Assembly: GCF_037042905.1 (NCBI RefSeq)
Contig: NC_087252.1
Location: 7,006,001 to 7,070,000 of the forward strand
Source of the DNA: Lytechinus pictus
Lineage: Eukaryota
Reading direction: 5' to 3'
DNA length: 64,000 bases
Every line of letters begins with the position of its first letter. The first letter of the stretch is position 1. Below the pieces are notes generated by a model, which was given only the letters and a program-made list of their open reading frames with translations, did not search any database and had not been told where the DNA came from. Shown here in pieces: positions 11,942 to 43,230 of the stretch. The translations under genes and the position numbers were made by a program.

Positions 11942-13020
11942 ACAGAATTCTGCAGCCCGTATTGTTACCCTTATCAGACGCTCTAGTTCAAGTTCAAATT
12001 CAATTTATTCAAAAAACCAGACATATTATGAGTACAAATCAATGATCAGATGTTACAAAAGAATACATGATACAATATGAACGGTTTTCTAGGACCCCGA
12101 AGAAGCACAGCTGGTGAGTGGGGTCCTATACCTCTAAATAAGATGTAGATCTAAATGTATAAAATGACAAAGGAGAATACATAATAAGCAGATATATCGA
12201 CTACAAATATGTACAAAATGTACATTAAACAAGTGTCAGCATAAACACAAACACACTCACACACACACACCCACACACACACGCAAACACACATGACTAG
12301 GATGGCCAACTACGAGATACATGTAAAACATAATAGACTCTATGGAAGAAAAACTTTCTAAATTAACTAAGATAATAGATTGTCAAAGAGGTATTTTTTA
12401 CATTGCACTTTAAACCGATAAAGAGTTGTACAGTTCCTAATATCAGAAGGTAACATGTTCCACTCCTTGATACAGGTTGTTATGAAAGAATTTAGGGATA
12501 CATTAGTTCTTACATAAGGTCGGTGGATACTACTCACTCACATAACTCCGGTTCTGTCCTCATTGCATTGGTTACCCATCGAGTACCGTATTGTATTTAA
12601 GTTATTATTGTTAGTTTTTCACTGTATCCATGGATCTGCCCCAGAATATAATGTTAATTTGTTGATGCCATACAATCCTCCTCGACGTTTAGGATCTTCC
12701 GATTCAAAATTGCTTACAGTTTCTAAATCTAAGAAATCATGGGGGGATTGGTCATTTGCACATGCGGGACCATCCTTGTGGAATCAGTTGCCATATTCGA
12801 TTCGTAGTATTTCAAATATCGATAATTTCAAAATTGCTCTAAAAACCGATTTGTTTAAAATTGCCTTCCAGTAGTTTCCTTTCATTTTCATGACTGTGCT
12901 TATTTTATCTTTGTCCCTTCCTGCTTCATGTAATTTTTCTCTTATTTCCGTTTCGTAGCGCCTTGAGCACATAATCAATGTGGATTTGGCGCTTAAGAAA
13001 TACTCTGTATTATTATTATT
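11942..13020 (+). mobile_element. 5'-truncated L2/CR1-group LINE, split by a second insertion
   Basis: QNSAARIVTLIRR (11943-) resumes as HITPVLSSLHWLPIEYRIVFK...GPSLWNQLP...FK..LKT.LF (ORF 12563..12874); (TAT)n tail. Confidence 0.85.
11985..12533 (-). mobile_element. 3' end of a CR1-like LINE nested in opposite orientation
   Basis: Minus strand encodes PYVRTNVSLNSFITTCIKEWNMLPSDIRNCTTLYRFKVQCKKYL; GGACCCC/GGGGTCC stem; AATAAA followed by a (TTGAA)-type tail. Confidence 0.78.
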
Positions 13021-16035: not shown

Positions 16036-16579
16036 ATTTGGTTTTGGTGAGGGGTAAAATAAAACGAAACAAAAACAGATTACTACTAGTGTTACGTTTG
16101 CTGGTCCTGACAAGCTCTTATTGTTACCTGTCCTGGACAAACTCCAACGTAAACCTCCTGAATCTCCATTCAGACATGCACTCATGAATAAGCAACAAGC
16201 CACGCCATGTCAAATCGTTTAAAACAGTTTATATACAAACATATATACACATGACGATTCAGATTCACAAGTCCGTTGTTCACCTAGCGATATCCTTTTT
16301 CTACTCTGTACTCCAGACTTAAACGTGTATTATTATCTCGTCACACTAGGAAAATTAAATTACACTTTTATATGCCTTCTGATACTAAATATACCACTGC
16401 ATAGCATAATATATTTGTAAAAGAAATTTAACAACAAATTCAATTTAGATCAAGTCAAGGGACCAATGGTATCCAGAGAAGAATGAAATGCGTGAATTAA
16501 TTACACATGAATCTAACACGTATGTCTTGAGCTTCCGTATAAAACACATATTGTGAGGCATTGTTTTATGCTCTTTGCA

Positions 16580-16639
16580 TCACATCTCCAGAGTAGAAGC
16601 ATACAACCCATCATCCAAGTCATTCAGAGACAAGTAACT
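16580..16639 (-). CDS. Copy A last coding exon, C-terminal tail
   Basis: TTTCACAG| SYLSLNDLDDGLYASTLEM*; conserved in copies C and D. Confidence 0.85.
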   Translation of the reverse strand, partial: SYLSLNDLDDGLYASTLEM

Positions 16640-19600
16640 CTGTGAAATAAGACAAAAATCGTTAAAATTTTAACGTCATCAAAAATTATATTTCAAACCA
16701 GTAATAACTTCAAATTTACTTCGATAATGACGGTACTTCACGGATTTAATTTATTTAGTTAGATATTTATTTATTTCCACAAAAACAATATATAATACAT
16801 GTTATAATGATCAATATGATATCAAATGCATGTCAAGAGAGATTCCTGTTAAAAGAAAAAAACTAGACTCCTTGTAATATAAATGGTACACATAAAAAAT
16901 CATACAAATTATTATACAACAAAAAACGAACAAAGAAGAGCCTTCTGTAAGATATCTGTACGACTTAAACTAGTTTTACGTGCACATCCCCAAACGACAT
17001 TCCAATAAGATAAATGTGTGTATATTCGTAAGTGAGCTCGTAATTAAAAATTTTTGGTTTTTCATATTCATGATAAATAATAATGGAAATAAGTGCAGAT
17101 GTTATTTTTTTATTCTATCTTACATATATATTGTTTTTTAATATATATTATATTATGGCATTAAAGAATTAATTGTATAATAAATCATGAATAAGATAAT
17201 ATGATAAAGAAAAGCGTAGTTGTAAAAGACACCAAGTAGTGTAAGAAAGACAAAATTGTTTTAATCTTACGTGTTTCTTTTCTAAAATCCTATCCATACT
17301 CTTCAGGATGTGATCAAAGTTACTCCGATTTTGGGGTTCCTTGTCCCAGCAACCAGTCATAACCACATACCTTTGAAATAAATTAAAGATGATGTTTATA
17401 TAGAAATATGTATATATTACATAAATGGTTAAGGAAGTATATATAAAATTGATTTAAAACATGGAATTATTAGAGGGGTAGGCCTATACACTACAGGCTG
17501 AAAATTTTATGATCTAAACAGACAGGGCTAATTCATACAAAGAAAACACTGGAAATTCCTTCAAAATCGTACAATAACAAAGGTATAATATCTTAAAGTT
17601 TTGCACTATTTTTTGGTGAAATAGTTGTACGTATGTCCACTCGAGCATACAATGATAAAGCTGATTCTATCTTCCCTTTTGTAGTATATATGAACTAAGA
17701 TTTTTTTCACATTTTGTCCGCCTAAAATAAAAAAAATTAAAATGATTGATAAGGAATGTAATCTGTGAGATATTTATTGCTGTATTTTTTTTTTTTAAAG
17801 GAAGACATATCGTATACACATAACAACAAAAATATGAAATAATTATTATTTCATGCAATTACTGAAGAAAAAAATGGGACAAAACATCATCGGCCCACAT
17901 TTTTGACGGCGTACATGTAGCTGTTTTCATTTAAAAAAATCCAATAATCTCGACATTTGTCAGATCTTGATGAAATAGGCCTTTTGCTAATAAAATGATT
18001 TTTACTATACTTTAGATGAAAATTATTTTCAACCCGGAGTACCCCTTTAGTATAGATCATTCAACTCATGTTCCCCTAGGATTGTGCGTAAAATCTATGA
18101 AGATTGATTTTTGTTAATCTTTGTTGTGAATTTGCAACATATACGGTAAATGAAATTTACGAGAGCAAACAACAAGAGAAATTCTCTATAGGTCAATCTA
18201 CAATCCTAGTAATCCTTGTCAAGCAAGTTTTAGATTTTTTTGATAGAAAATAAGTATTACACTTCTTGTGCACAGTGACGAGGACATGGCATCTGGTAAC
18301 CATTAGCAACCTCCGTCCGAACCGTGCTGAATGTCATATTTGGGTAGGGCCTTGCACCTATCAGAATGTAAAAGCAAAAATTATATTATGAAGCATCTGA
18401 ATATCATATATCTAGAAGTTGACCAAAATAAATATATATTGTTAGAAGTAGAAGTATGAACATGATGTCAAATATTGATTCCTTATAATGAATATCTCGA
18501 CACCGATAAATATATGTGCATAATTATGTGCCCAACTGAAAAAAAGGCATAAATTACAAGTTTTTTTTTGGTCCGTTTATCACAGCTACAATTACTGTGT
18601 CTAATGTTATACAGTATATTATTAATCTGACTGTCAGTCACAGGTTTAACCATACCTAACCTAAATAACTTTATTTGTAACAATCATCAATCCCTTTTAA
18701 AATGTTCAACATCACCCGGCGTTTTATATATCATTATAATGTTGATATCATTATCTTTCGAGCCGAGTAAGGATATCTTTTAAAATGTTGTTTTGATATT
18801 TCCGTCACTGTTCTTGTTGTTGTTGTTGTAGCAGCAGTAGTCATGGTAGTAAAAGTAACGATGTTGCTTTTGTTGTATTTTGCCTTTTATCATAATCATT
18901 TACCATTCTATCATCGATAATTGGTAGAAATTATCATAATCACCACAATCATTAAACCCATCGTTGTTATTTATTGATATATGACTAACATATTATTGCA
19001 TATTAGACATTTACACACAAAACTTCGTGCACATCCTTTCTTACCCAGTGTCACAATTTCCCACAAGACGATACCAAAAGACCATATGTCTCCTTCTGTT
19101 GTTTGGTCACCCGTTGCCATGGTTTCTGGTGAACTCCATCTGGATGGTTTCTATATATGACGGTGTGCAGATGACAAATAATCTTGCTATAACAATAATT
19201 CAAGCGATTGGTAATTATAATATGCAGTTAACCTATAAAATGTCAAAGATGTCTTAATACTGGCCGAAACAAGCAATAATAAAGTGGTATGGTTGCAGGC
19301 TGAGGATCAAAGTCAAGGGTCATGTGAGTTAGGGTTCCAGCCTCGCTTCATTTAGAATCATATATTTTCATTTACATTATCAAGTTATCAAATAGGAGAT
19401 TAATCTCTATGACAAGCCTACACCATAAACATTCATTATTGTAAGGCATAACGAGTCACACTTACAGCTACGTCACCAAGGAGCGATGAAGAAAGTCCGT
19501 AATCTGATATCTTGCATTGCTTTCTTTCTCCTAGCAACACATTGTGAGCGCAGAGAGCCCCGTGGATGATCTGAAGAAAAGAGAAATACACTTGCAACTC

Positions 19601-22600
19601 TGTATAGTGTTTAGTGTATTCATATACATGTATTTTGATCTCTGTGAAAGTCGACAAATTTCCCGTCTTACATCTGTGTTAAAAAAAGGAACGATAAACC
19701 CTTCCTATTCCTATTGTACTATTAGTAATACCTGTAATGTTTCCAAACAAAAATAATTTAGGTTTCTGGAAAGTATTGCTGCCGAAGGTATTTATGAGGA
19801 TATGGTTGTGCAGAGTTGCAACCCTAATTACGAAAACGATTTCTTATCTTGGACCGGTCAAGTTTTCATGTCTGACTAAAAGGGTCCCTTTCAGCTTAAA
19901 AACCGATTTTTATTTCCAAACCCAACTGCCTTCCTTTCTCCTCTTATAACCCTTTTTTGTTAAGGAATCTCATAAAAAATACCTTCTTAGATGCAAGGAA
20001 CTGCATCCCTTTAGCAGCCTGCCAAGCCAAGTTAAGTAGGGTACCCTCATCAATACGAACACCGTTTGGTTTGAGATTGCTGTACGTAGGTTGAGATTGC
20101 ACCCCTGAAGTATGTAGATGGGTAAGGAGTGTACCCCCTGAGATGAACTCATACAGAATACTACCTGCATGCGTGAATACACATAAAAACTGTGGTGTTA
20201 ACCGGTGTACATAGAGGACCACATCAGTTATTTTACACCGGTGTTGAATCGGTGGTGGTGTCATTACAACACCTTTGGTTGTTACATTTACACGCTTTGG
20301 TGTTATTTTTAATCTTTAGGGTGTAATCTTAACACCTCGGGGTGTGGTCCTATATTAACACCAACTGGTGTCAGTTTTAACACCGCAGTTTTTACAGTGT
20401 AATAGATTGTAATAGAAAGGAAAACTCTGTGACGTCATGTTTAATAATTGCATCTTCTTCATTGTAATTTAGGATAAGTATCCTTGAATTATCAAATGGA
20501 ATGGATTGTTATTGTGTCTTCTCCTTTTGTTTTGGTGTAAGAACCCCCAATGAAGAACCCCCTGGATGAGGGAAAGGGGCCAACGAACTCTTTAGCGATT
20601 AAAACAAATATTGATATATTTTTGTGGTTTCCAAGAGAACCAATTATATTCCATATTACACAATTAAGATGGTTTACGTACCTTGTTCTTTACAATATCC
20701 TAGGCATTTTACAATATTTGGTTGATCCGATAGCTCGTAAAGTACCTTGATGGCTTGAAGAACTTGTAATGATTTTGTCACGCGATCTAAGATAGTGTAA
20801 AGTACATAATGATATAATGGTATGACCTTTCATTTTAATATTCCCCTTCCGGATTGTTCACCATTGACCAATTTCTGGACAAGCAGAGAATATACCCAAA
20901 AAATTATATTATTATTATTAAAAAATGGGGCATGTTTCCCCCCTTTCAGTAACCCTGAACCCCCCCCCCCCCCCCTCCTTCTTTGATCCCGGTGAAACTG
21001 AATTCAAGTGAAAGAGAAGCCTGTGGCGTCAAAACTATTTAATTATTTGCATTGGTTTCCAATCTGCTTGTTCAGAATGACATCCTAAAACGATATGGTA
21101 ATAGCATAAATAATGAAATTAAAATTTAATTGAGATGACAAATTAAGAATGACCTTCAAATTTGAACTTCTCTCATTGTTATTAATTATTGTTAACTTTA
21201 CGAGCTACAAACCATCACCTGGTATTTGCCTAATAGCAACGTCGAGATGGTTTTGTTTTGATTGAAGGTCTCCCTTCCATACCTCGCCGAAGTCACCCCG
21301 CCCAATCGAGCCGAGTCTGGTGAAGAATGTCACGTTTTCACGGGCAATGACGAAGGAGTGGGTAGTACCAAGTTTTAACGTTGTGTATGCTGCATTGTTT
21401 TAAAACATATACATTTTCGACTAAGTACATTTAAAATACATGTACTTAAAACACCTAATCCATTATGTCTGATCTTGTGAGATTTGTAGTAAGTGTCTTG
21501 GTCAATAATATATTTCCAGAGAATATAAAGTAACTATGGATTTGAGATTAAAAAATATTTTTTATTGTAGGAGGTGAACATTTTAATGAACATTATTGCA
21601 TATAATAAAATACTAAGTTACAAGTGGAAATAACAAAATCATCAATTAACCCACTGAATATTCATGAAGAAATGCAAAAAAATAATTTATAGTGATATAA
21701 TACAAATCTTTAGAATGTCATAACATTTTTTCCCCTTTATAAAATTTGTAATGCTTTGTTTGATTTTCCTTTATCTATTGGAATAATATTATTTTCCGCC
21801 TGGAGTACCCGTTTAATAGTAGTGGTATACATCTTATAAAGAGTTCCCTCGCACCACTTAGAATAAAGATAAGGTAAACACCTGCTGACGCTTAAATATA
21901 TTTTCACTTATCCTTTTTTGTACTTTTGGCCTATATGCCATAGAGACCTAATTGTGAATTATCAGGATGATAAAGATATAATACGAATGACGTTCTTTTT
22001 TTTTTAACAGAACATTAAATCAAAGTAGTTGTACGAATGCATAATGTTTAATAGAAAAAAAAAGTTGACAATAAAATACACGTTTATTTGAATAAATAAT
22101 ATTTAGATGGAGTTTAAGATTTAATGATACACAGCTAATATGCAGAATCAATAGATAAGTTAGAAAATTTAATTCTTGAGTAATTTCTCACCTCGATTCC
22201 CACTTTGAATCATCTCATAAGCCACGTTATCATTCACTTCCTGTGGTATATTTATTTCATTGCTGTAAAACATATATAAATTGATTAGAGTTTATTTCAT
22301 CTCATGAGAAATGATATTTTTTTTTGTTAACATCCACTTAAAGGCATTTCATGGCACACATATATCAGCAACAATTACAATGAGGGAAGTGTTATATTAT
22401 TCAATGAGTATTACTCATTATTAAAGCGTTCCTAAGAATGAGATTAAGAAAAAAAAGGCTCAAAAAACGCCTTTATTATTTGAAGGATCTGGGTTTTTCC
22501 CCTTTTGGAAATAAAATCAAATATATATCTGTTGAAATGAATTTATCCTTTGTCCTCCTATTTCCGTCAGTTAATGTGTATGTATCTCAGTAAAATTTAC

Positions 22601-25600
22601 GCGTGAACGTTTGAATTTACGTTAATACTAGCTTGTGTGTTGAGGCGAAGTGTGTATGGTTAGAAATGTGAGTGTGTTCCGTTCTTTTCAATGGTATAGG
22701 ATGTTGTAAAGTTTGGTATAAATATGTGTGGTTATTTAGTATGGGCTGTTACAGTATCGGGTTTGAGGGTGTGCGCGAGTGGATGAATGTGTGGTGAGTG
22801 AGTGCGAGGTTGTACGGGCGTATTCGTAAGGTGAGCTAGAAGAGTGTGTGCATGCACGGGATGCGAGTTGTGTGTCAGAGGACGGGAGTGTTAAAGAGGG
22901 AGTGATGTGTTCGAGTGTGAGAGAGCTGTGTGTGTATGATAGGGAGCAAATGTGAAAGTGCAGGCAGTGTCTGTAAAAGTGTGTGTATCTTTAAAGATAA
23001 GTGTGAGTGCGTGGGTGTGTGTGAGATTATCTGAGTAGGTGTATGGGTGAGTGTGCGTGTTTTTTTCATGTGGGGGAGAGAAAATGGTGTGCAAAATTTG
23101 TGGGTTTGGTTTAATGGAGATATGTACATATTATAGATTCATTGTAGTCATGTAAAATGTGAGCGTGGGTGTTGCCTTCTAGGGTGTGTGTGTATGTGTG
23201 TCCGACAAAATATTTTTCCTTCTACTTACCTCTTATTATTCTTTGAATCATGGAACTCTAGTTTAGTGGATAAATATATAAATATACACGTTTACATTAG
23301 AGTGATGAAGAAAAAAAATGTAGCCATATGTAAACTGAGATGGCAAAATAAATTCAAGAGAGCACTCGAGGTCAAGATGCTCAAGATTTTATATACCTTT
23401 GCTATCAATTTTCGGTTTTATATCCCCTTGATAAAACATTAACGTATCGATGATCATTTAATATCCCACCTACTTGAATTATGGTATAGTAATTCTAACA
23501 CGATCTTACTAAGCGGAAATATGCTCAGATCTAGTTAACAAACCTTCTTTAGATAAACGACAAGACACGATATGTGTAGTGAGGGAATAATAATGTTGCT
23601 TTAATGTGTATTTTTATGATCATCAGAAAAAATACATTCCAACTTTGCACCTTTACAAATATTAGACGAGGAACACCTTTGAAGTTGCACCTTTGAACAT
23701 GTTCCTCTTGTGTTGGAGTTATACTTTTTTAAATTGGTATGACTTTAGGTAACATGTCCATTGTTTTACCTCGTCTATGTAGTTAAGTTAAACAAGGGTT
23801 ATTACATTACATTACTTCTTCTTTTACATTCACATTTACTCTATGTGAATATAACTACTCAGTAATCACCTGGTTTGGTTTTTCCCCTAAGAAGAATGAA
23901 CTGAACAATGTTGACGATGATAGAAGCTACTAAGAGGATGGCTAAAATAGCTATTCCAGCAGATGCTCCAGAACTCAAAGGACATGGTGTAGGCTCGGGT
24001 GTAGTCTCTGGTTGGTGAGAGAGTTTTATATCAGATGTTAATATAGATTGTGGAATTTAATTCATATGAATTAATTCGTAAACCTGTAAAATCCGATTGA
24101 TCATAGATTATAGTTCAACCATAATCATAGATTACACTACAAACATACAGCAAGAGGTAGAAGGTCCATGCTGCAACCCAGTTTTCGGGACGACATTCTA
24201 TAATAAAACCCGTGCAGTATGTCAGCCATCTATGGTCTCATTTCTAAATCTAATTATATGTCCATAATTATTTTCAATCTTCAAATTTGCCGCAAAACAT
24301 ATCACAAAATAGTAAAATAAATCACTGTCCTAAACTGAATTTCCTTTAAAAGACAAGAAGAAAAACGTCTGGGCCCGGATTCACAAGGAGGAATGACTAA
24401 GTTCTATAGAGCTATAATAACTTAGGGCTGAGCTAAATTCTAGGGGGTTAGAATTTGTATTTCACGAAGAAGGGTAAGGTTAACCCAATAGTTAAAATAG
24501 TAGTCAATTAAATATAATCAAATATAATAATACATGGGTTTACAACTCATCAGTTGCATAAGTAGTCGACAACTGTTAGGATGCACCATATACGGGTAAT
24601 GGGCTACATTTTTATTTTACAAAGTTTCAAAGTGGCGAAGATGAAAGTCTAATTTTGAAGAATGTGATATCATATCTACAATAATTTCCTACTAAATCTG
24701 CATCTCTCCCACTTGGGTTTTGCGCCACCCCCATTATTACATATATTTCACAGTATTTTATTCATTCATTGTTCATGTTCAAACATTAAATGAATGTGTT
24801 TGTGCTGGTGATGTGGTGTACTAAAGAGGTGCCTCGGCCTTTTGTCGGTATGTTTGAGGAAGAGTGTCTTTGAAGATATTCCTTTTAACGAAAAAGTATT
24901 TCACTAACTTATGGCAGGTATGATTGGTATGATAGACCTGCAGTATAATGACTTACTGAAACCATTTATGATAAATATAAATGAAATTATAATGATGATA
25001 ACATTAAAAATGATAATAGAGATAGCATTTATAATTATTGTTATAATACGAACAATAGAAATAATGATCACAATGATAATAACGGTGATAATAAAAATAA
25101 CATTAAATGATAATAAAACTAACAATGATCAGAATAATAATTATAATAATGACAATAGTATCATATAATGTAAATACCATTAATAATAATTGGTATTTCG
25201 TAGCACCATCAACCTAGAAATATTCTATTCGGCTGCGCACTGTTTTTTTTTTTGTCATTGTAAGATGGAAAAGGGACTTCCTAAAAAATATCCACCACCG
25301 AAAGAGGAACCTTGTAAATAAAATTTTGAAAGAAATGAATTTACACTTCGTCTGGAGCCCAGGAAAACAATAGTAAACGGACTTTGGACCCTATTATATC
25401 TTGAATACCAAAGCGAATTCGCATGATGTGTGCAAATAAATATCATATTGACATTGATCCTTCCATATACACTGCCATGCACAGTTTATCTATAGAGAAA
25501 TGTGAGATTCTGTTACGGATACAAGTTTAAACCTGAATTTGAGGCATTTTCAAGCATTAAGTTTCGTGCAGAATTGCATGTCGATTAATGTTTTCATTCT

Positions 25601-28600
25601 ATCGTCGTTAAGAGATAGTACATAACAATATTGAAGAATGCACAGGCACAGTGACTACTTCCTGATATAAACTCGTCAAAAAAAGTTTGGAAATCTGACT
25701 TTGATCGATAATTGTTCCTCGGTTTTAGTTTATATTAATGTGTAATATATACTAATCAATAGATCATTTAATTCTCTTTAAAATTATACCCTACATGATG
25801 TGATTGTGGTTCACACGGAGGTACAGTGCCTTGAAATGTGGGGGCAAGGTCAAAATTCAAAAGTTGCAAAATTACACAATATTGAAACTCACTGTTCTTT
25901 TTATCCGTGATGATGAGTGAGTTATTCAGCGTTTTTTTTTTCATGCACCTTAACATCAACATTAATATGGAATCAAACACACATCTGCACAAGCAAACAC
26001 ATAACAAACAAGCATACATGCATGGGTATTTCAAAACACGACTCAAACTATGTTATCTCACAGAACCATGCATGACTACATAAACCAAAACAAAACATCA
26101 ATAATGAAGAAATAGGGGCTTGATTTGAATGGATTTTCATCTCTTTTGACACATAAAAAAAGAATAATGTTCTTTAATGACCCTTCGTGATTATTTCTGC
26201 TCCTTTTGCAGCTTTTCAATTCAGACCTCATCCAAAACTTTTGATTAATGTTCTTTTCGTTATGGCATGATCATAACAAGCATGGTATCAATTTAAATGA
26301 TCTTTTGAATGATATCAAATATACATTGTGTGAAATTGGGATAAATTAATGGCCAAACTCAAATTTCCTAACTTTTTGAAGGGTATATTTAGAAATGTAA
26401 TCATGCTTACTATATATCAATCACTATGGCTTTTGTAGTGCACAATCTTTTCGCCAAATATCTATGCTCCAGGCTTGATGACAATCCCCTCGTTTGATTT
26501 GCCCCATGCAGTGAGTAACTTGTCTGCCTTCACACAAACCATATGTATAATATGAAATTTTAACAAAAGGCGTAACCTTAACTTTCTTTGATTGTATATA
26601 CAAAGACAAGGGAGAAGCAAGTAATTCTTAAAATAATAGGAGCATTTTGGGGGTATCACCCGCCCACCCCCTCTAAATCTAAAATTTTATATATTCAATT
26701 CTATATCAAGGTAATGAACCAAATTTCGACAACTAACGTCCACATATGGGGTACATTCTGATGGTTTCATTATTTTTCATTATTTGTTGATAAATTTTCA
26801 GCTCGTGCACTTTGCTTTCTCAAATAACATCAAGTGGGGAAGTGACTTTTGGTGCTCAATAGCCCACACTTATTCAATTCAGCATTTATTTCGAATTCAT
26901 TAAAAATACAAGTTGATATCATGATCATGTACACACAAAATCAGTGCCACTACTTTTTGGACATACTGGACCACTGTCATTTTTACTTGTCCCAATGTAT
27001 TACTTGACCTTTCAAACCTTAGTTTAAATACCACAATCTTATCTCTCAGGTGGATTTTTAACGAAGTATGTCAATTTTCTTAGTATCAGCAGTAAATTTA
27101 GACTACATTTTTGAAGCCATCTTGGATTTTTGGACACACTGGACCACTGACTGTCTTTTTTAACTTGTCCTCATGTATTATTTTACCCTTCAAACCAACA
27201 GCAAAATCATATTTTCCCAGGTAGATATCAAATGGACGATGTCTATTTGCGGTCATTCATTTTAGAATCCATTTTTGAAGCCATCTTTTTGGACATACTT
27301 GACCGCTGGAATTGAGGTAATAGTTGAATTGTGGATTATAGGGCTTTGTCAGCCATTTTGGACGCCATTTTTTTATTTTTTAGGTACCAGCTGGTCTACA
27401 TGTTTTTGCTCAATTGTCTTTTTTTTTCTTTTACCCCTGTTACCCATTTAAACCATGAAATATGCACCGAAATTTGGAAGTTTAGTGTGCAAAGTGTGTT
27501 ACATCTTGTAACCGGAAATTTCCGTTTCTTAAACTTATTTTGGCTTAACGCTCTTTTCCTATTTATCATTATTCATCACAAATATAGGAAGGTCGCAATA
27601 TGTAGCTGGATACGTTATGAGGGCAACATCTATTGTTTCGATTATATTCTTATTCAATTGTTTATTACATTTTTAACTAACACATGAAGAAATAAATAGT
27701 CAGTAATTTCCATATGAAAACTTTTGGGGACTATAGCGCACGAGACCTTTTTTTTTTCACATTCGTAATTTCTAACCCCCATCCCCCCCCCCCTACTCAC
27801 ACGCACTAGGCAGAATATTAGTGTACACCACAGAACACTTGACTGGTCAATACCGAATATGTACCTGAATTCGTCTTTTTGAATAGCCACACCACCCCCA
27901 CCCCTTGAATTGAAAAAAAAATTGATGTAATAAATAGGGACATGAATAAACTTTTTATTTAGTATTATTTCGTATTTACGACTGGTGTTATTCGTTAAGG
28001 TGTATTAGGTGCATATTAATAAAATGATATTACCAAAAATGTGTTTAGAAAATCAAACTGACATTGTCACCAAGAATAAACAATAAATAACCCAAAACAG
28101 ATGAAAGAATGATACAAGTACAAAATTGGGTGAAGGAAAAGAAGATTATCAAAGGTCAACATACCCTCCGTTGGATTCGAGGTTTGATCGTCTATTTCAG
28201 TTGGCGTTCCTTTCAAATAAGTTCGATCAAAGAAAACAAATATTGGAAAGTGTTACATGTATGTCTGAAAATTGATAAATTTCATCAACTAATATCAAAC
28301 TAAACAGTTTTTTTCCCTGATGAGTTCATGATTAGTTTATGATATTGTAAGTTTTTCATCATATTGTTTTGTTGACCCCCCAAAAAATAAAATGCAAAAC
28401 CAAATCTAAATAAAGTTGAAAAATATAATGAGTTCGATCAAAGAAAAAGAAATATTTGAAAGTGTTACAGGTAAGTCTGCTAAACTTGGGTGAAAATTGA
28501 TAAAGTTCATCAACTAATATCAAACTAAACAGTTTTCCCCTAAGTTCATGATAAATTTATGATATTGTAAGTTTTTCATTATATTGTTTTTATATTTGGT

Positions 28601-31600
28601 CTTTGTTGACCCAATAAAACAAATAAATACAAAAATAGATATAAATAAAGTTGAAAAATATAACCCTGGTTTACATCAGTAATTACATTTCCAATGTAGT
28701 GTCTAAAACAAAGCATAATACACCATAGTGTTTTACGGTGATTAACTGACGACGTTATCATGATTATGATACATAGTCAATGGCATATTGTACACGTTTC
28801 TTTCACCTCAATCCCAAATAAAGACATGGCTTCTCCTTGATACCATTTTGAAGTTCATGTGTATAATATCAATTGAGTAATTATTTTGAGGAGGTGAAAA
28901 AGAGGATATGACCATCTGCACAATGTAATTTGAACTGAATGATGATTCTACGCACTGTTTGAAGACATTGAAATTTGTGAGATACTTCCTATTTTTGTGC
29001 AAGCGCCGTGAGCGTCTAGTTGTGGCGGATACCGGCGCTATTTTAATACAAGAACTCATCATCATCATCTATAACAACAAATAAAATGTTGCTTATAATT
29101 CACAATTTCGCGCAAATTTGTTATAAAAGGATTAAAGTAGGCCTACATACCAGTTGTCGGGGAAGGATTGGTGGTTCCTGATATTGAAAACAACAATAAT
29201 GTATTTAAAAAAAAATAAAGAGTTATAATTAGAATAATAATTTTTACATGAAAAAAAAAATAAATCTCCATCGTCTCCCAGTGAATGTAAGATATTTGAC
29301 AAGAAATTAGCACACCTCACAACCTTTCTGTATGCCGCCATCGGGTCTTTGTGGTTACATTGCTCACTGAGTTTGGGGAAGGTGTGAAATGGTTTGTAGA
29401 AAACCACAATCAAAATTTCCATGTTGATATTTGAAATGGCAATTTCTCATTTTTATTAGAAAATAGATAACAAATGGAAAAAATGGGATAGGGTTAATTT
29501 GATTGCTCTTTCTTCGCATTGTATATATGTACTAGCTTTCAAACAAAATGAGCCTCATGAATGCTTGTTATTGTCATCATTTTGTTTATCTCTTTTGTCT
29601 CTTTTGTATTTTTTTGGGGGGGGGCGAGGGGTCTATACAAAGGCAATTTCATCTACATACATGACATACACATACAAGTCACTTATACACTTTAATGCAC
29701 AGCCAAAAACACAAGCGTGACCCACCCCCGCAAACCCTCACACACACTCATGTGCGCGCACACATCCTTGAACTAAAGGCTGGTTTCTGGATATATAAAA
29801 CAATCGGCAACAAATTACATCCTGCATCTCCTGACCGACAGAAGGAAGGGGCTTCGGGGCTATAAGAAAATATGAAACCTGCGGGGTCACAAGAAGAAAA
29901 TCCTTAAAGGACAAGTCCACCCCAAGAATAAGTTGATTTGAATAAAAAGATAAAAATCCAACAAGCATAGCACTGAAAATTTCATCAAAATCAGATGTAA
30001 AATAAGAAAGTTATGACATTTCAAAGTTTCGCTTAATTTCACAAAACAGTAATATGCACATCCTGGCTGGTATGCAAATGTAGGAACTGATGACATCACT
30101 CACTCACTATTTCTTTTGTATTTTATTTTATGAAATATGAAATATTCTAATTTTCTCCTCATTGTCAAGTGATACAACGATTGATTCCTCCCTGAACATG
30201 TGGAATTAGCATTGTTTAATACTATATGGTTTAGTCAAGTTGGTCCTTATTGTCAAATCTATATACAAAATGAAAAATTGTATAATTCAAACAATAACAA
30301 AACAAAAGAAATAGTGAGTGATGGACATCATCGACTGACTCACATAGTTGTGCATATCACTGTTTTGTGAAAAATAAGCGAAACTTTACAAATGTCATAA
30401 CTTTCTTATTTTACATCCGATTTTGATGAAATTTTCAGCACTATCCTAGATTGATTTTTCTTTATTTTTCAGGTCAACATTTTCCTGGGGTGGACTTGAC
30501 CTTTAACAAGAACAAGCTTATCACATGGAAAGGTTGATATCGTGAGCTTTATAAAAGCGACAACAAAGACAGATTTTTAGGGTAATGACAAGAATAAGAA
30601 TTTTGAAGGTATATTTTCTTACTTATTGGGTCATATGTAACTGCTGCACTAAGTGATGTATTTCCAAGGTAATTACCAGCCATACACGTGTACGTTATTC
30701 CAACTTCAGGATTTGAAGTAGTGATATCATTCACACTATTAATTGATTCATGTATCAGGGTACCATTAGAGAATATATAGTAGTTTCTCATTATTGGAGT
30801 AGGTTCATTATGTGCGGTACATGTTACTCTGATGTCTGTTCTATCGGTTATATAATCAACAGTGACAGTAGTACCAGCAGTAGATGGAGAGGCTATAGGT
30901 TGGAAAAGAAAAACAATCACAATGAAATAATAAATAACAGAAAGCTGCCTTCCAATTAATATATCATTGTATGATACCAACTCTCAATTAAATCAGGAGA
31001 AATTCCAATACACGATCAAATAGGTTACCATATTGTTTAAAGTGGCATCCATTCCATAAAAAGTAGTTAAAGAGGAAAGAAAAAAAATCAGACGAGTAGA
31101 TAGTTGAACGTTTGGAGAAATGACGAACAATAAGGACGTTATGGGTTTTTAAAAGATTGGTTATCACTGTCCCCATGGATACTACGAATTGGCCGCAGTT
31201 GTGATTTCATATTTATATAAGGCAATGGCAACTTTCCATTCACTCCAATAAATGAAATTACTTTTTCTTTCAAAAGTTTTACTTCACATTATAATTTATT
31301 TTAAGGACATAACACAATATGCAACCTTTAATTCAGTATGACTACTGCCCCAGGTTGCATGTAAACGACTTTAAAAATTACTCTTCCTACTTACTATGAA
31401 TGTCTAAATCTCTTGATTCCTGACTTTCGAGCTCTGTAAGCTGATATCCAGTAGCGCGACATTCCAAAGTCTGTAAATGATTTTCTTGAGTTGCTGGGAA
31501 AGTGAACGTACTCATTGTATTAGATAATGGTGGATTAGATGGTGTTGGTGGGTGTGTTTGCACTATCGTCTTGCCATTGCCATTAGTCTGTTCAACACCA

Positions 31601-34600
31601 TTCAGATACCATGTGATGTTAACTTGTGGTTTGCTTCCAACAACTTCACATGTTGCTTCATACATATCCTCTTCACTGCTACTTACAAAACTTCTTACAG
31701 TTGGTCCAGTTAAAGTTCCTGGAGCTAAAATCAGAGAAAAATATTTACAAGTGACGATTTAGTAATACCCATTACTTTGGTTTATACCAACTTTTATATG
31801 GGACCCTGCAGAAAACAAGTGGAATACTAGTCTTAAAAATAACTAAATAATTATAGGAATAAAGAAAATTTTGACAGAATTAAAAGGTGATTTGTCGATT
31901 TTGAAAGACCACCGAATTATGATTTCATGTAAAATTAAGAAATGGGAAAATGGGGTCATAATATTATCAACAGCATCACATGTTGCTTCATACATATCCT
32001 CATGATTTACCAAGGTACTTATCAGTCAATGTCACACTTGGTGCAGCTAGAGAAAGAATAATGCAGGTTAATCCATTTACCATACATGATAATATCACTT
32101 ACCCTTTAGCTTATGTTTAGGAAAGGCCTCTAAATCTAAATCGTAGGTCCTAACTGAAATCAATAAAAATTACATTCGCATGAACTCACTTCGTAGCTTA
32201 TTTTTCAGTTTGCATGACTGGTATCAGATTAAATTTCTTCCTCTCTTTTTATAATTTCCTTTTCTTCTCTCTCTTTTTATACTCTCCCTCTTGCTCCCTC
32301 CCTTGATGTAAATAGCTACTGTAGATCCAGCGCAATTTTCAATTGTCTCTTATTTCATGTGTGTGTATTTATGCTGAGGTAGTATGAACTACCGATAAAA
32401 AAACATAGAATTTAAAAACTTAGAAATTTCGTCAAAATCGGACAAGGAATAACAAATGTATTAAATTTATAATTTCCCTATTTCGTCAACGTTCTATACA
32501 TGTCTTCATGAATATTCAAGGAGCAAACTGATGATGTCATATCCGCACCTGTTTTTTTTCTTTTACATGAAATTATGTTTTTCAAAGTTTGTCCTACGAT
32601 AACTAAAATTGATTTAGTGCATTAATTAGATATTCATCGCTGCAAATTATTTTATCATAAGGGATACATATCATATACACTCGTATCGAAATATGGAATA
32701 ATATACGATTATTTGTAATAAAATTAGAAAAAGGAAAGTGTGAATGTGACAAGGGTGACGAGACGTCCCGTACTTTAAGGGGCATTCTTTCATATCACAT
32801 ATTGTCCAGTGTCCCGTACGACGATGCCCGTGACGCCGTTTTGTCTCGTATTTCATGATTTTGAACACATTCAAGAGAGAATATTCTTGCATTTTACTTT
32901 GTTCTCTAAAGGGAAACTCACGATAAACAGATTTGTAAATCTTTTATGTATTATTTTTTTGAAAATTTCCGTGATACCTACTAAGTAGAGAAAGACTATG
33001 TAATCAGCAATAGATATGAACGAAGAGTGTGCGTTCATGCTCATATTATAGCCTTTCAAAAATGTGTATTCAATAATGGCCTTCATTCTAATTGGATTAG
33101 TGGCATAATGAACCGAACATGTAGAGGGACCACAACATAACTTAAGTGGGAAAATTCGGGCCTTTTTTGAAGGGCAATCTAATTTTGTGATATATCCAGA
33201 ATCATGTATATATTTCACCCCTTTCCCTTCCCTGTTTCCCCTTATGTTATTCATTTATTTATTTATTATTAATTTGTTCGTTTTCTTTGTATTGGATTCC
33301 CCCTCCCCTTCTGGGAGCACAAAATTCTCCCCATGTATACACCGGCAATTTCGATTTATTAAGTTGTGATATGATGGCATATTCAGCATCATCAACTTTT
33401 GCTTTTAAGAAAATAGCTAGGAAATATGGGAACACCTGTCTATCATTTTGAACATTTGTTTATATTTCTTTCCTTTTTTTCAGTACCAAATTTTGTACTG
33501 CCATATTTCATATTCCTAAAGTGGACTTAGCGAAACGAGCAAAACCAATGAGAGAAGGATTTTTTTTTGCAAATCCGAACAGAACAAAATTTGTATCCAA
33601 ATTTCAAAAGTCAAAATTTAATATTATGAACACGGAAACTCTCACGGAAAGGACAATACTAACAAACATTTATACACACATGCCTTATATTTTATATGAC
33701 CTGATTGCTTGTCTTTCCATACTCCTTTCCTATATTGTAATTCGGCAAAATTTAGACCAAAAGATGTGGTAGACAGGTAAATTGAAATTAAATCACATCT
33801 ATTCTCTTTGCGTTGTTTTTAAAGAAGCAGATAATGGATAAATTCATCAGAATTATTTGCGGTATCTCTGTAAATGAATCAAATCATGTGTCGATTACAG
33901 CATAAAACTAATCAACTACTCAACTCAAGACACCGGACATACTGAAACTTCCCGTCCTACACCAGTCCAAGTAAAATTAAATGAATGAACAGAGAGGTCC
34001 AACGGAACCATATTTTTTTCTCATTCCAAAAAAAAAAATCTTGAGAACATATTAATGAGGTTATTTTGTATAATTTAGAAATAGGGGCGACAGCCCGGCG
34101 AGGGAATTGGTATTTAATAATTAATAATTTACTATCGGACCAACTAATGTAGATAGTGAAGGGGCTTGGTGGATTCCGTATATTCTGAGGACTAGGGAGG
34201 AAATGGGAAAAGGAGAGAAAACTAAAGGAAAGGGTGAATTATATTATAGTTTTCTAAATTAAGGTGTCGAAATCTAGAACACAAAATTAGTTTTTTAATA
34301 AAATTTCATTGCAGTACCACTTCAATCATGTAAAGATATAACTTTGTTGCAGTACATTATATTGTTGACCACTTTATTATAAACATTGATCCTCCATGTT
34401 ATAACCTTGCTACTGTTACCACATATAGATATGAATATGGCATTGTCATTCCTCTGTCTTTGCATACTGCAAAATATTAATCCTATAAAGACTGTTATAA
34501 TATTGACTAAACACTTTATTATAATCATGCTACTGTAACCTTTATAATCTATTTGCATGTGTATGTATAAAAATTTCTTTATTTTTTAATACCAATGCAA

Positions 34601-36425
34601 AATACATCAATCATGTTAAGAGGTTTGTGCAGTTCTCACTCATTCAAATCACTTTGCTAGAACAATTTCATTGTTAAATTTACAGATATTATTTCATACT
34701 TACTAGCATTTTAAAATGCCAAATCATTTCAAATCATTTTCAATGTATTTGTTGTCTTTGTAACAATATGTTCACATGCAGACATGCAAGAGACGACTCT
34801 TTTTTACTTAAACTTGTACAGGCCCTTTCTATTCACACGAGTATTTTTAAAGTGTAATTCACAAGTAATTTCTTATCTGTTAATTCTTACTATAGCTCTA
34901 ATTTACTTTTCTCAATTGTCTTATTTCTCTTTCTTTCTTCACTTTTCTCCTTTTTTTCTCTTCTCATGCATTCTTTGATTCATGGATCTTATACATGATT
35001 TTATCTCGAGATCTAATCTATATCTTAATTTCAGTTGCTATTTTTTAATTTGTTTAATTTCCTCAATAAATTTGGTTATCAAATCGCTTAGGTTCTTAAT
35101 GTTGCTGATGTTCATTTGTATAAGGTTGTTGTGACAGTAGTTGAACATTATGTTGTTTTTTTTTCTTATGTCATCGTAAATTGAGTTTCCTTCAGTTGGT
35201 ATTTGGTCAGAATGTATGAAATATCGGAACCGAATATAGGCATGGGACTTATCATAAAATAAAAGGTTTACTCACTGTGTACTATATCAGACCCCTCCCC
35301 GCACAAACACTTACACAACACACACAGACACGCCCACCCTCACACACACACACACACACATACAAACAAATATGAATTCCTCGTTACGGGCCTGAAATGT
35401 GTTTGAATATATCCTTTTAAAATGTGGTTATTCACTACGTTTAATGCTGCATTAACTGCAAGGATTACAGTAAGAACAATTCCAAGCACTTAATAGCTTG
35501 TCCAGTTTCACACAAGATATGAACATCAAGTGTCATATAAAATTTGAACTCAAAACATGCTGTGCATTTTACTCACCTTCCACCACAAAGTCCAAACTGC
35601 CATCAGTACCCTGAATTTGACATATATAGACCCCATCATCTGTTACTTCTGCACTAGAAATTGTCATCACTGATTGTGTATTTGTCAGGGTAGTTACATC
35701 AAAGTTTCTGAACTTTTCATCATCAGTGATAGGGACTGTTCCAGCAAAGATACTTTCACCTGTACTATCATCTACCCATATAATTGCAGCTGCTGTTCCA
35801 CCTGTAATATCACATGTGAGTGTGACATCAGTCCCAGCTGCTGCAGGCGATAAACCGGTTACAGTTGCCGTTTGCCCATTGGTTCCTGGAATAAATCGGG
35901 TGAGAAGTAAACAAATTAATTAAGATTGTCTGGTATTTGTGGTAAAGTACCAAAATCGTTTTAGAAAACACAACATGTAGCCTCTCACAATGTATTGCTT
36001 TAAGGCTTTGGTTGCCAAATATTAACTTGTCAGCTCGAAAGTCTTTCCTAACTGACCTAACCAAGTAATAAAATTGACCGTTAGTTTAATGCAATTGTTC
36101 TTATAAATTCGAATTACTAAAAAGATTTTTTTTTTTCAGGTTATATTTTAAAGATTTATATGCCAAAGATTATTGTTTTAGGAGATAGGGCTGCCCAGCT
36201 AAAACTGAAAATGTTGAATATCACATTTGTAATCACAGACATTTTGAACTAATCTCTCATTTTGATTAGTGGCTGATCATTTAATCAACGACTCAGATAT
36301 AAGAATGAAATCACCTCATTTCGATTACTACTAATCTTTTAACTAATTTCAAGACAATTACCCATTACAAGCAGCAGAATAGCAATTCCACGTAATGAAT
36401 CCAGGCCAGCCATCGCCTTGGTCAT
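16580..36425 (-). CDS. Copy A: complete spliced gene for an Ig-domain receptor tyrosine pseudokinase (SP-IgV-Ig-Ig-stalk-TM-ITAM-like-pseudokinase), ~720-730 aa
   Basis: Hand-assembled exons, all GT-AG and phase-compatible, no internal stop: 36362-36425, 35577-35885, 31395-31724, 30623-30892, 29151-29177, (28165-28191), 23870-24007, 23230-23257, 22192-22262, 21219-21389, 20682-20786, 19983-20164, 19466-19570, 19045-19150, 18261-18357, 17271-17370, 16580-16639. Kinase motifs [46 protein letters not shown] and CW..EP..R..F. Confidence 0.88.
17271..17370 (-). CDS. Copy A kinase exon, subdomain XI
   Basis: YVVMTGCWDKEPQNRSNFDHILKSMDRILEKKH; GTAAGA donor. Confidence 0.92.
18261..18357 (-). CDS. 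Copy A kinase exon, subdomain X
   Basis: GARPYPNMTFSTVRTEVANGYQMPCPRHCAQEV, phase 1->2. Confidence 0.9.
19045..19150 (-). CDS. Copy A kinase exon, subdomains VIII-IX
   Basis: [35 protein letters not shown](G). Confidence 0.93.
19466..19570 (-). CDS. Copy A kinase exon, subdomains VIb-VII (degenerate catalytic loop)
   Basis: IIHGALCAHNVLLGERKQCKISDYGLSSSLLGDVA; TTCAG acceptor, GTAAGT donor. Confidence 0.92.
19983..20164 (-). CDS. Copy A kinase exon, subdomain V, kinase insert and VIa
   Basis: GSILYEFISGGTLLTHL...PTYSNL...LLNLAWQAAKGMQFLASKK; inside ORF 19944..20264. Confidence 0.92.
20180..20399. mobile_element. TA-flanked MITE with CAC...GTG ends and ACACC/GGTGT internal repeats
   Basis: CACATAAAAACTGTGGTGTTAA...TTAACACCGCAGTTTTTACAGTG; lies 15 nt from the start of exon 19983-20164. 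Confidence 0.75.
20682..20786 (-). CDS. Copy A kinase exon, subdomains III-IV
   Basis: DRVTKSLQVLQAIKVLYELSDQPNIVKCLGYCKEQ, matching the RTK HPNIV.LLG.C segment; 105 nt. Confidence 0.88.
21219..21389 (-). CDS. Copy A kinase exon, subdomains I-II
   Basis: AYTTLKLG...IARENVTF...[14 protein letters not shown]...LDVAIRQIP; 171 nt, phase 1-1. Confidence 0.9.
22192..22262 (-). CDS. Copy A juxtamembrane exon (SNEINIPQEVNDNVAYEMIQSGNR)
   Basis: TTTTACAG acceptor, G|GTGAGA donor, phase 2->1. Confidence 0.75.
22640..23200. repeat. Degenerate (GT)n-rich tract
   Basis: GT/GA-rich low complexity; explains the His/Thr-rich ORFs. Confidence 0.8.
23230..23257 (-). CDS. Copy A juxtamembrane microexon (EFHDSKNNK)
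   Basis: CTAG acceptor, AG|GTAAGT donor; its phase 1->2 is needed to put the next exon in frame. Confidence 0.7.
23870..24007 (-). CDS. Copy A transmembrane exon
   Basis: ETTPEPTPCPLSSGASAGIAILAILLVASIIVNIVQFILLRGKTKP: hydrophobic helix followed by basic stop-transfer residues; 138 nt, phase 1-1. Confidence 0.88.
24960..25190. repeat. Degenerate (AAT)n microsatellite
   Basis: ATA/ATG/AAC triplet run; explains the Ile-rich ORFs at 24904 and 24911. Confidence 0.85.
28165..28191 (-). CDS. Copy A candidate second 27-nt stalk microexon (DDQTSNPTE)
   Basis: ATAG acceptor with weak pyrimidine tract, G|GTATGT donor; same length and phase as 29151-29177. Confidence 0.45.
28219..28660 (+). repeat. 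Local tandem duplication, 2 x ~215-230 bp
   Basis: agttcgatcaaagaaaa...taaagttgaaaaatataa occurs at 28220 and again at 28431. Confidence 0.85.
28925..29070 (+). mobile_element. 3' tip of the same LINE family as 49948-51300
   Basis: ttgaactgaatgatgat...gcaagcgcc..gagcg...ggataccggcgcta...(CAT)n. Confidence 0.85.
29151..29177 (-). CDS. Copy A 27-nt stalk microexon (RTTNPSPTT)
   Basis: Pyrimidine-rich tract, TCAG acceptor, G|GTATGT donor, phase 1-1, Thr/Pro-rich. Confidence 0.7.
29908..30502. mobile_element. Full-length TTAA-flanked MITE (Kolobok-like)
   Basis: TTAA-AGGACAAGTCCACCCCA...TGGGGTGGACTTGACCT-TTAA with ~200-bp imperfect inverted arms. Confidence 0.9.
30623..30892 (-). CDS. Copy A exon, third Ig domain (I/C2-like, no core Trp)
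   Basis: 270 nt, phase 1-1. IRVTCTAHNEPTP...YYIFSNG...TYTCMAGNYLG; inside ORF 30549..30980. Confidence 0.88.
31395..31724 (-). CDS. Copy A exon, second Ig domain (C2-like, nectin/nephrin type)
   Basis: 330 nt, phase 1-1. ATCEVVGSKPQVNITWYLNG...STFTFPATQENHLQTLECRA; overlaps ORF 31387..31665. Confidence 0.9.
31965..32046 (-). pseudogene. Relic of a duplicated Ig2-type exon start
   Basis: TTCTTTCTCTAG acceptor, then AAPSVTLTD / frameshift / TLVNHEDMYEATCDAVD. GAGGATATGTATGAAGCAACATGTGA is identical to the live exon near 31647-31672. Confidence 0.65.
35577..35885 (-). CDS. Copy A exon, V-type Ig domain
   Basis: 309 nt, phase 1-1, CCAG|...|GTGAGT. VTLTCDITGGTAAAIIW...MTISSAEVTDDGVYICQ carries the Ig Cys, Trp and D-x-G-x-Y-x-C motif. 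Confidence 0.9.
36362..36425 (-). CDS. Copy A coding exon 1, signal peptide
   Basis: MTKAMAGLDSLRGIAILLLVM(G), phase-1 donor GTAATT; second in-frame ATG at 36413; conserved in copy B. Confidence 0.8.
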
Positions 36426-42939: not shown

Positions 42940-43166
42940 GAGCTCAGTTGCAAAAGGGGTTAGGTCCATTTTTCATCAAATTTGATTTTTTTTTTTGTCT
43001 CAATGTATACATTTTTAGTAGCTCTATAAGATGATACCAAAGAAAGGTTGAAATTCCCATTAAAAAGTAAACAAAAATGGCAAAGAAAAATCATCTTTTT
43101 TTCAAAAGGGGTTAGGTCCAATTCAGTTTGGTTGCAAAAGGGGTAAGGTCCACAATGATAATTTTT

Positions 43167-43230
<64 letters not shown>

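Follow-up and report, generated by a model that had tools for sequence, protein, structure and literature searches.

A sea-urchin family of tandemly arrayed, nectin-like receptors with a tyrosine kinase-derived pseudokinase domain

What kind of receptor joins three immunoglobulin (Ig) domains to a tyrosine kinase fold that lacks its catalytic residues, and how could such a receptor signal? The question is raised by a 64,000-nucleotide stretch of the genome of the sea urchin Lytechinus pictus (C8:7006001-7070000 in an 812-Mb genome; AT-rich, with 33% GC), which we refer to as the window. Between positions 16580 and 36425 it contains a gene, called gene B here, that a first-pass annotation made from the DNA letters had described as a member of a tandemly amplified family with an IgV domain, a dead tyrosine kinase and a motif similar to the immunoreceptor tyrosine-based activation motif (ITAM). 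Our analysis places gene B in a sea-urchin family of receptors whose kinase domain is dead by sequence and conserved, and whose Ig domains change faster. Such receptors probably signal through tyrosines that are phosphorylated by another kinase.

Gene B is read on the minus strand from position 36425 to position 16580 in 16 exons. Its introns are all GT-AG, and its coding sequence of 2181 nt is unbroken and encodes 726 amino acids. On the minus strand, stop-to-stop open reading frames (ORFs) found from 16.5 to 36.5 kb encode a signal peptide, three pieces of Ig type together with a transmembrane segment, and tyrosine kinase pieces in collinear order. Pfam searches with single exons returned V-set/I-set, CD80-like C2-set and Ig_2 matches, and matches to PK_Tyr_Ser-Thr that follow one another in order over profile positions 6-257. 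A RefSeq protein of 726 residues from L. pictus (P0021) maps onto the 16 exons with zero mismatches. The mapping also revealed a 45-nt stalk exon (exon 5) and a 28-nt mini-exon (exon 7) that are beyond the reach of ORF scanning; without the mini-exon, the transmembrane exon and exon 8 mismatch in phase. The complete, in-frame spliced gene that had been proposed is therefore exact in its exon chain and identical to an independent RefSeq protein. P0021 mapping, Pfam and the kinase alignment also agree with the domain order read at first pass: signal peptide, IgV, two further Ig domains, Thr/Pro stalk, transmembrane helix, YEMI-x6-YTTL, kinase fold and tyrosine-containing tail. The public name of P0021, assigned automatically in RefSeq, is ‘fibroblast growth factor receptor 2-like isoform X2 [Lytechinus pictus]’. 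Gene B is present in the public annotation but misnamed.

RNA reads, whose placement covered window positions 16500-22400, provided a check of the exon chain. Contigs of run X1 contain seven joints with CT..AC ends (GT..AG when read on the minus strand), each placed precisely at an exon boundary: 8/9, 9/10, 10/11, 11/12, 12/13, 14/15 and 15/16. X1 depth is found on exons and, except for a repeat at 20046-20439, not in introns. The joints and the exon-restricted depth indicate that X1 holds spliced gene B mRNA. Seven of the last eight junctions are confirmed in this way; for the eighth, between exons 13 and 14, the sole support is a loose end whose sequence is that of the beginning of exon 14. 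The repeat at 20046-20439 lies in intron 10. It reaches a contig depth of 4,500-7,500 in X1, carries the only real coverage of the deep RNA-seq runs X4-X6, and its reads end loosely at 20185 and at 20399. These features suggest a dispersed repeat that is strongly expressed and does not belong to the gene.

The architecture of P0021, with a signal peptide, an ectodomain, a single transmembrane helix and a cytoplasmic kinase domain, is that of a receptor tyrosine kinase (RTK). Residues 446-698 match PF07714 (PK_Tyr_Ser-Thr) with E=2.2e-65. A PDB sequence search with the kinase domain found Tie2 (1e-47), followed by Fes, PDGFR-alpha, RET, KIT, VEGFR2 and FGFR1, with full-length alignment. The predicted structure is bilobal (predicted local distance difference test score, pLDDT, 83.5; predicted template modelling score, pTM, 0.84), and its template modelling (TM) scores to Fes, FGFR, RET and Tie2 are 0.70-0.77. 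When P0021 is aligned with active relatives, the residues on which RTK catalysis is judged (the beta3 Lys, the alphaC Glu, the HRD Asp, the DFG motif and the activation-loop Tyr) are found to be lost or altered. VAIK is replaced by VAIR, the alphaC Glu by Ala, HRDLAARN by HGALCAHN, DFG by DYG and APE by SPE, and the activation loop is 8 residues shorter and has no Tyr. Other elements persist: the Gly-rich loop, the Asn of the catalytic loop, the Asp of DFG and the core of the C-lobe. Because the VAIK Lys and the HRD Asp are missing while the fold is kept, the kinase domain of P0021 is a pseudokinase by the usual sequence definition. Residual catalysis was considered and dropped, since the domain retains neither the catalytic base nor the beta3 Lys nor the alphaC Glu. 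Together with its place among RTKs in the kinase tree, these losses uphold the original description of the domain as RTK-derived and, by sequence, catalytically dead.

How old is this loss, and from which RTK did the family arise? Relatives were gathered by phmmer searches with single exons against 1.84 billion representatives, which gave 16 matches that were used to obtain full-length relatives. Among the matches, the family is found only in sea urchins (Lytechinus, Strongylocentrotus and Diadema). Every member examined from the three genera has Arg in place of the beta3 Lys, HG-x in place of HRD, and DYG. Relatives from starfish, brittle stars, crinoids, hemichordates, amphioxus, molluscs and arthropods have active motifs, except for HCD in Patiria and one HGD in place of the HRD triplet. 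In a maximum-likelihood tree, the sea-urchin pseudokinases form one clade (100/100). Since the dead motifs are present in all sea-urchin members and these form one clade, catalysis was, as judged from the motifs, lost once, before the Diadema-Lytechinus split, and the fold has been kept under purifying selection since.

The same tree bears on the public name of P0021, which would make gene B a true FGFR orthologue. Gene B does share with FGFRs three Ig domains, a transmembrane helix, a split kinase fold and a Y-L-x-L sequence just after the kinase domain at the position of ‘EYLDL’ in FGFR1, and FGFR structures are among its best fold matches. In the tree, however, true FGFRs form their own clade (100/96), which is split from the gene B family by a branch with 100/100 support. 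FGFR, RET-like and Tie-like kinases are on one side of this branch; the pseudokinases, Cad96Ca, an amphioxus pair, and active echinoderm and hemichordate RTKs are on the other. The tree held no PTK7 sequence. The Ig domains of gene B are also of other types (V-set and C2-set_2, with Ig_2) than the I-set of FGFRs, and the catalytic residues and activation-loop tyrosines are missing. FGFR orthology is already refuted by the tree and the motifs, and we give it next to no chance. The tree yielded no one-to-one orthologue of any characterised receptor, as the first-pass annotation had supposed.

The kinases on the same side of the 100/100 split, Cad96Ca/Stitcher and the Cad96Ca-like RTKs of starfish, brittle stars, hemichordates and amphioxus, are instructive for comparison. 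They have in common with the gene B family a C-terminal tail pattern, Y-[IL]-x-L...L-D-E-x-x-Y, and in the starfish Asterias one of them (P0055) joins the same kinase type to a V-C2-Ig ectodomain. They keep VAIK, HRD, DFG and the activation-loop tyrosines, bar the HCD and HGD variants, and look active, whereas the gene B family is dead by sequence. Arthropod Cad96Ca differs further in its ectodomain, which contains a cadherin repeat (PF00028); the gene B protein has Ig domains and no PF00028 match. A search from an active Asterias protein found a large echinoderm expansion of this kinase type with many different ectodomains; among families outside it, arthropod Cad96Ca (about 49% identity) and true FGFRs (about 47%) come closest. 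An active relative with VAIK, HRD, DFG and a similar tail (P0143) is encoded on the same chromosome as the gene B array. Starfish and brittle stars have dozens of active RTKs of this kinase type, with Ig, FN3, Sushi+WSC, LDLa, SRCR or EGF ectodomains; this set is an echinoderm-wide domain-shuffling expansion with unreliable automatic names. The public names of the gene B family members are likewise without phylogenetic meaning.

The cytoplasmic part of the receptor also carries tyrosine motifs. P0021 has the sequence YEMI-x6-YTTL at residues 410-423, encoded across the exon 8/9 junction that is confirmed by reads, and it fits the ITAM pattern YxxL/I-x6-8-YxxL/I. A match to this pattern occurs in only 2.6% of composition-preserving shuffles of the cytoplasmic part. 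The form VAYEMI-x6-YT[AST]L is present in all array copies that include the segment, in S. purpuratus and in L. variegatus. A paralogue on C17 probably has the x6 motif as well, with one junction residue unread. In Diadema members the sequence is YEMI-x9-Y[QE]PL, which is outside the ITAM spacing rule. VAYEMI fits an immunoreceptor tyrosine-based inhibition motif (ITIM; V-x-Y-x-x-I) equally well, and it also resembles a Src SH2 site. Docking of PI3K p85 at YEMI was dropped as a candidate, as the Met is at +2 and not +3. The second juxtamembrane tyrosine has an aligned counterpart in the juxtamembrane segments of FGFR1 and of the active proteins from Asterias and amphioxus. In the tail, Y-L-S-L...L-Y-A-S-T aligns with D-Y-I-x-L...L-D-E-N-x-Y of the active relatives and with the ‘EYLDL’ position of FGFR1. 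The corresponding positions of FGFR1 and RET are SH2 docking sites. Based on this alignment with tyrosines of Asterias, amphioxus and FGFR1, the second juxtamembrane tyrosine and those of the tail appear to be RTK docking sites that were inherited and outlived the loss of catalysis, with one further tyrosine gained upstream. The earlier proposal that the family replaced its own catalysis with docking is therefore overstated, because these docking tyrosines would be inherited and not new.

These observations are most easily brought together in the following model, which we consider probable on balance. The gene B protein would be a non-catalytic receptor that is clustered through its ectodomain, phosphorylated in trans on conserved tyrosines and read by SH2 proteins, with its kinase fold as a scaffold. 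The receptor itself would be unable to phosphorylate. The receptor would cluster when its fast-evolving ectodomain meets a ligand or a partner on another cell, and a cysteine in the stalk may keep it dimeric even before that. Phosphorylation of VAYEMI and YT[AST]L in the juxtamembrane region and of YLSL and LYAST in the tail would then fall to a second kinase, which could be a Src-family kinase or an active Cad96Ca-like RTK such as P0143. SH2 proteins would dock on the phosphorylated sites, and the preserved kinase fold could serve as a scaffold or a dimerisation module.

The ectodomain, too, was compared with known structures. The ectodomain of P0021 consists of a signal peptide and three Ig domains with disulphide pairs 46-110, 150-213 and 259-304, and it carries three N-glycosylation sequons. 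Its predicted structure (pLDDT 85) has its best PDB matches in Necl-4 (E=4.5e-16), nectin-1 (TM score 0.57-0.60) and Necl-5, so the V-C2-C2 ectodomain of the nectins and nectin-like proteins (Necl, CADM) is the best structural match of the gene B family; the Pfam C2-set_2 match is shared as well. The identity between these ectodomains and that of the gene B protein is only 17-20%. The cytoplasmic parts also differ: nectins have a short tail with PDZ (afadin) or 4.1-binding motifs, while the gene B protein has a 345-residue pseudokinase tail that ends in STLEM. The transmembrane helix is at about residues 358-378. About ten residues before it, in a Thr/Pro/acidic stalk, exon 6 encodes an unpaired cysteine, Cys348. 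Paralogues have one or two stalk cysteines (TPCPC, PCDC or LCTC), and this type of cysteine recalls the hinge cysteines of disulphide-linked immune receptors. In S. purpuratus, a relative with a short tail and no kinase domain (P0053) has the same ectodomain, and has been automatically named ‘cell adhesion molecule 3-like’.

The nectin/Necl-like ectodomain leads to a different model, in which the gene B protein is a HER3-like or PTK7-like co-receptor of an active Cad96Ca-like RTK. It would act as an allosteric activator or a decoy, and its nectin-like part would couple it to adhesion in development or wound repair. Drosophila Cad96Ca/Stitcher acts in epidermal wound repair. The strong conservation of the kinase fold and C-lobe is consistent with this model, as is the presence of P0143, with its similar tail, on the same chromosome. 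The ectodomains of that active relative and of the gene B family differ, however, and nine or more fast-diverging tandem copies would be unusual for a developmental co-receptor. We regard a co-receptor role as doubtful, if worth keeping in view.

The gene B family is arranged as a tandem array. Kinase exons K3 and K4 have nine copies within 470 kb (C8 6.67-7.14 Mb), all on the minus strand and with 90-100% amino acid identity. Two of these nine kinase-bearing copies, g2 and g6, carry in-frame stops. The IgV type of gene B is present in only six array copies, and the other copies have more divergent ectodomains. A single K3/K4 copy on C17 has about 69-76% amino acid identity. Three further sites on C8, at 37969400-37969700, 28792400-28792700 and 4228750-4229050 (L024-L026), contain distant dead-kinase genes whose catalytic loops read HGNLRASN with DYG, or HGSLCAHN with DFG kept. 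They belong to sister subfamilies whose ectodomains are of other kinds, for instance a single IgV or Sushi repeats, which indicates that the pseudokinase radiation is wider than the C8 array. On the plus strand, C8:7237154-7241664 (L023, L027 and L028) contains a trio of IgV, C2 and Ig exons that are 78-82% identical to those of gene B. No transmembrane or kinase exon was found within 20 kb downstream of the trio, which may be a kinase-less family member or a remnant.

Selection on the two halves of the receptor was compared by Nei-Gojobori estimates of the ratio of nonsynonymous to synonymous substitution (dN/dS) with bootstrap intervals. Between intact copies the kinase domain has a dN/dS of 0.14-0.41 (dN 0.004-0.04), and against the C17 paralogue, at a dS of about 1, a dN/dS of 0.20 (dN 0.20). 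The kinase domain is under purifying selection. The three Ig domains together have a dN/dS of 0.6-1.2 with intervals that include 1 (dN 0.07-0.12). In exon 4, which encodes the third Ig domain, pairwise values are 0.35-3.5 and exceed 1 in half of the pairs; the value of 3.5 is reached on about 90 codons. In four of the ten pairs with both halves, the bootstrap dN/dS of the Ig domains is almost never below that of the kinase domain (P<=0.01). At the protein level, the rate of change in the Ig domains is about three times that in the kinase domain, and the faster divergence of the ectodomain described at first pass is borne out. The two halves also have different histories. Among the array loci L012-L020, the dS between gA and g5 is 0.136 for the Ig half and 0.020 for the kinase half, and that between B and g4 is 0.088 for the Ig half and 0.176 for the kinase half. 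These several-fold differences between the halves of the same pair point to an exchange of halves between array members, by gene conversion or unequal crossing-over. With nine kinase-bearing copies, two of them with in-frame stops, with remnants and with mosaic dS, the idea of a tandem array that evolves by birth and death is well founded.

Stop codons and remnants could also mean that the copies are decaying relics without a function, or duplicates made by the assembly. Besides the two interrupted array members, the fragments called remnants C and D in the window, which are 97-99% alike, and the very low read depth in X4-X6 can be counted for this explanation. It is opposed by the frames of A and B, which are intact over 16 exons, by a kinase dN/dS of about 0.2 that persists at a dS of about 1, by the occurrence of the same dead motifs in three genera, and by the existence of spliced transcripts. 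Gene B and its neighbour in the window, paralogue A, have introns that are 83-90% identical and so differ by 10-17%, and each has its own RefSeq protein. On these grounds A and B are true paralogues, and the explanation by relics or duplicates is already contradicted for both; overall it is very improbable. Remnant D is embedded in a 97%-identical copy of the 3' part of C. The C/D repeat differs by a 7-kb versus a 2-kb segment and may have arisen by recent tandem duplication or be an artefact of haplotypes. The concern that the other copies are assembly duplicates is thus answered for A and B, with both possibilities standing for C and D. Similarly, the count of four copies or remnants in 64 kb holds for one complete gene (B) and remnants C and D, with the nuance that only the first two exons of A are within the window.

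Recombination between copies, birth and death in a tandem array and fast-evolving Ig domains are also what an immune or self/non-self receptor system comparable to KIR/LILR/NITR or Hydractinia Alr would be expected to have. In such a system YEMI-x6-YTTL would be a true ITAM that is phosphorylated by a Src-family kinase and recruits a Syk-type kinase with tandem SH2 domains. The fit of the motif, its rarity in shuffles and the x6 spacing kept in the Lytechinus and Strongylocentrotus members that have the segment agree with this, and so do the hinge-like free cysteine before the transmembrane helix, the kinase-less P0053, which recalls paired receptors, and expression in one of three samples in each of two studies. 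On the other hand, the spacing in Diadema is x9, the ITIM-like and Src SH2-like character of VAYEMI does not fix the sign of any signal, the second tyrosine has counterparts in the active relatives and FGFR1, and dN/dS is not significantly above 1. An immune receptor system with a true ITAM is unlikely in our judgement. We hold at a similarly low likelihood a broader version, a recognition system built on an RTK chassis, in which a polymorphic, recombining nectin-like array would be combined with a dead-kinase scaffold and an ITAM/ITIM-type switch read by Syk, Src or SHP-type SH2 proteins. If true, immunoreceptor-style signalling would have arisen independently in sea urchins, in the service of immune, allorecognition or gamete/cell-contact discrimination.

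Several observations weigh against our preferred model of a trans-phosphorylated, non-catalytic receptor. The rise in dN/dS in the Ig domains, not significant above 1, could be explained by relaxed constraint rather than by selection for diversity. In the tree, the inner nodes on the Cad96Ca side have supports of 66-84, which do not single out a sister group for the pseudokinases, whose stem branch is long (0.88). The junctions of exons 1-8 come from the RefSeq model together with the presence of these exons in X1. The deep RNA-seq runs X4-X6, of which about 6% each was read, have almost no exon reads; their raw reads neither confirm nor refute gene B. In each of two studies, one of three samples contained the IgV exon (word fraction 0.92 in X1 and 0.84 in X7, from the second study), and the sibling samples had none. 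These missing reads, together with the nearly empty exons in X4-X6, suggest that expression of gene B is narrow or low.

The features of the locus are collected in Table 1. Remnant C is interrupted by a retroelement, which extends over 49097-51300 and whose 3' region occurs twice within it at 98.5% identity (49097-49743 and 50654-51300); a second retroelement fragment with a similar C-terminal ORF is located at 12518-12871. Inside an intron of paralogue A, 854-2072 and 2429-3667 form a 1.2-kb inverted repeat with 88% identity. Intron 7 of gene B contains a long CA/ACAC-rich low-complexity tract (22620-23140), with Thr-His repeats in several frames, that causes a GC-skew spike at 22-24 kb.

Table 1. 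Exons of gene B, copies and remnants of its family, and a retroelement ORF, in window coordinates
Feature	Position	Strand	Evidence or remark
Gene B exon 1: start codon and signal peptide (hydrophobic core AILLLVM)	36362-36425	-	P0021 exact mapping; GT donor
Gene B exon 2: V-set/I-set Ig (Cys46-Cys110)	35577-35885	-	P0021 mapping, Pfam; present in RNA-type runs X1 and X7
Gene B exon 3: CD80-like C2-set Ig (Cys150-Cys213)	31395-31724	-	Pfam PF08205 E=4.9e-11; P0021 mapping
Gene B exon 4: third Ig (Cys259-Cys304)	30623-30892	-	Pfam Ig_2; P0021 mapping
Gene B exon 5: 45-nt Thr/Pro/acidic stalk	28165-28209	-	P0021 mapping
Gene B exon 6: stalk with unpaired Cys348 (TPCP), transmembrane helix, basic stop-transfer	23870-24007	-	P0021 mapping
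Gene B exon 7: 28-nt mini-exon, restores phase between transmembrane exon and exon 8	23230-23257	-	P0021 mapping
Gene B exon 8: juxtamembrane, first tyrosine motif VAYEMI	22192-22262	-	P0021 mapping; joint 22192/21389 in spliced contig
Gene B exon 9: YTTL (second tyrosine motif), Gly-rich loop GRGDFG, beta3 VAIR (Lys to Arg)	21219-21389	-	Mapping, read contigs, alignment
Gene B exon 10: alphaC helix, conserved Glu to Ala	20682-20786	-	Mapping, read contigs, alignment
Gene B exon 11: hinge, kinase insert, alphaE	19983-20164	-	Mapping, read contigs; nine array copies, 90-100% identity
Gene B exon 12: catalytic loop HGALCAHN (HRD lost), DYG, shortened Tyr-less activation loop	19466-19570	-	Mapping, read contigs, alignment
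Gene B exon 13: P+1 loop SRWSSPE, alphaF	19045-19150	-	Mapping, read contigs
Gene B exon 14: C-lobe	18261-18357	-	Mapping; joint to exon 15; loose end from exon 13
Gene B exon 15: kinase-domain end	17271-17370	-	Mapping, read contigs
Gene B exon 16: C-terminal tail SYLSL...LYAST and stop codon	16580-16639	-	Mapping, read contigs, alignment
Paralogue A (P0020) exon 1	7793-7874	-	Own RefSeq protein
Paralogue A exon 2, IgV, 85% amino acid identity to B	6903-7211	-	Remaining A exons left of window
Remnant C, K5-like exon, 94% amino acid identity, retroelement-flanked; K1-K4 and Ig exons absent	48904-49008	-	
Remnant C, K7-like exon fragment, 60% amino acid identity	46490-46564	-	
Remnant D, K7-like exon fragment inside 97% copy of 41321-47709	62968-63048	-	
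Reverse-transcriptase ORF of a retroelement of the type without long terminal repeats (non-LTR), interrupts remnant C	49917-51131	+	Pfam RVT_1 E=8.6e-25

The gene B family can also be compared with known receptors. PTK7/CCK4/Otk, ErbB3, ROR, RYK and EphA10/EphB6 are also single-pass RTK pseudokinases that have a kinase fold without catalysis and signal with partners. These pseudokinases are few, old, single-copy and much studied. PTK7 has an Ig ectodomain too, with seven Ig domains compared with three in the gene B protein. To our knowledge, the known RTK pseudokinases are conserved single genes from other RTK branches, and none is a fast-evolving tandem array or derived from the Cad96Ca/FGFR/RET kinases. 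The tandem array with birth and death, the domain-level recombination, the faster ectodomain and the tyrosine motifs in the tail are instead reminiscent of KIR, LILR, NITR and Hydractinia Alr. These receptors have short tails or adaptor chains, and we know of none with a kinase fold. The family is apparently undescribed: no description was found in the full-text literature searched, and an earlier mention in a sea-urchin kinome paper or a pseudokinase survey is possible. One literature lead, Epith-2 (PMC3757445), was irrelevant to the family.

Our analysis thus describes a group of RTK-derived receptors in which, as far as the motifs tell, catalysis was lost once and the fold has been kept since before the Diadema-Lytechinus split, in at least nine copies per genome, joined to a fast-changing nectin-like ectodomain. 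It corrects misleading public names, including FGFR-like, Tie-1-like, Cad96Ca-like and Fer-like. The family is a natural experiment on why a kinase fold persists after the loss of its catalysis, and it is a candidate receptor family for cell-contact or immune recognition in sea urchins. Because laboratory breeding and genome editing of Lytechinus pictus are possible, the role of the array is open to test by deletion.

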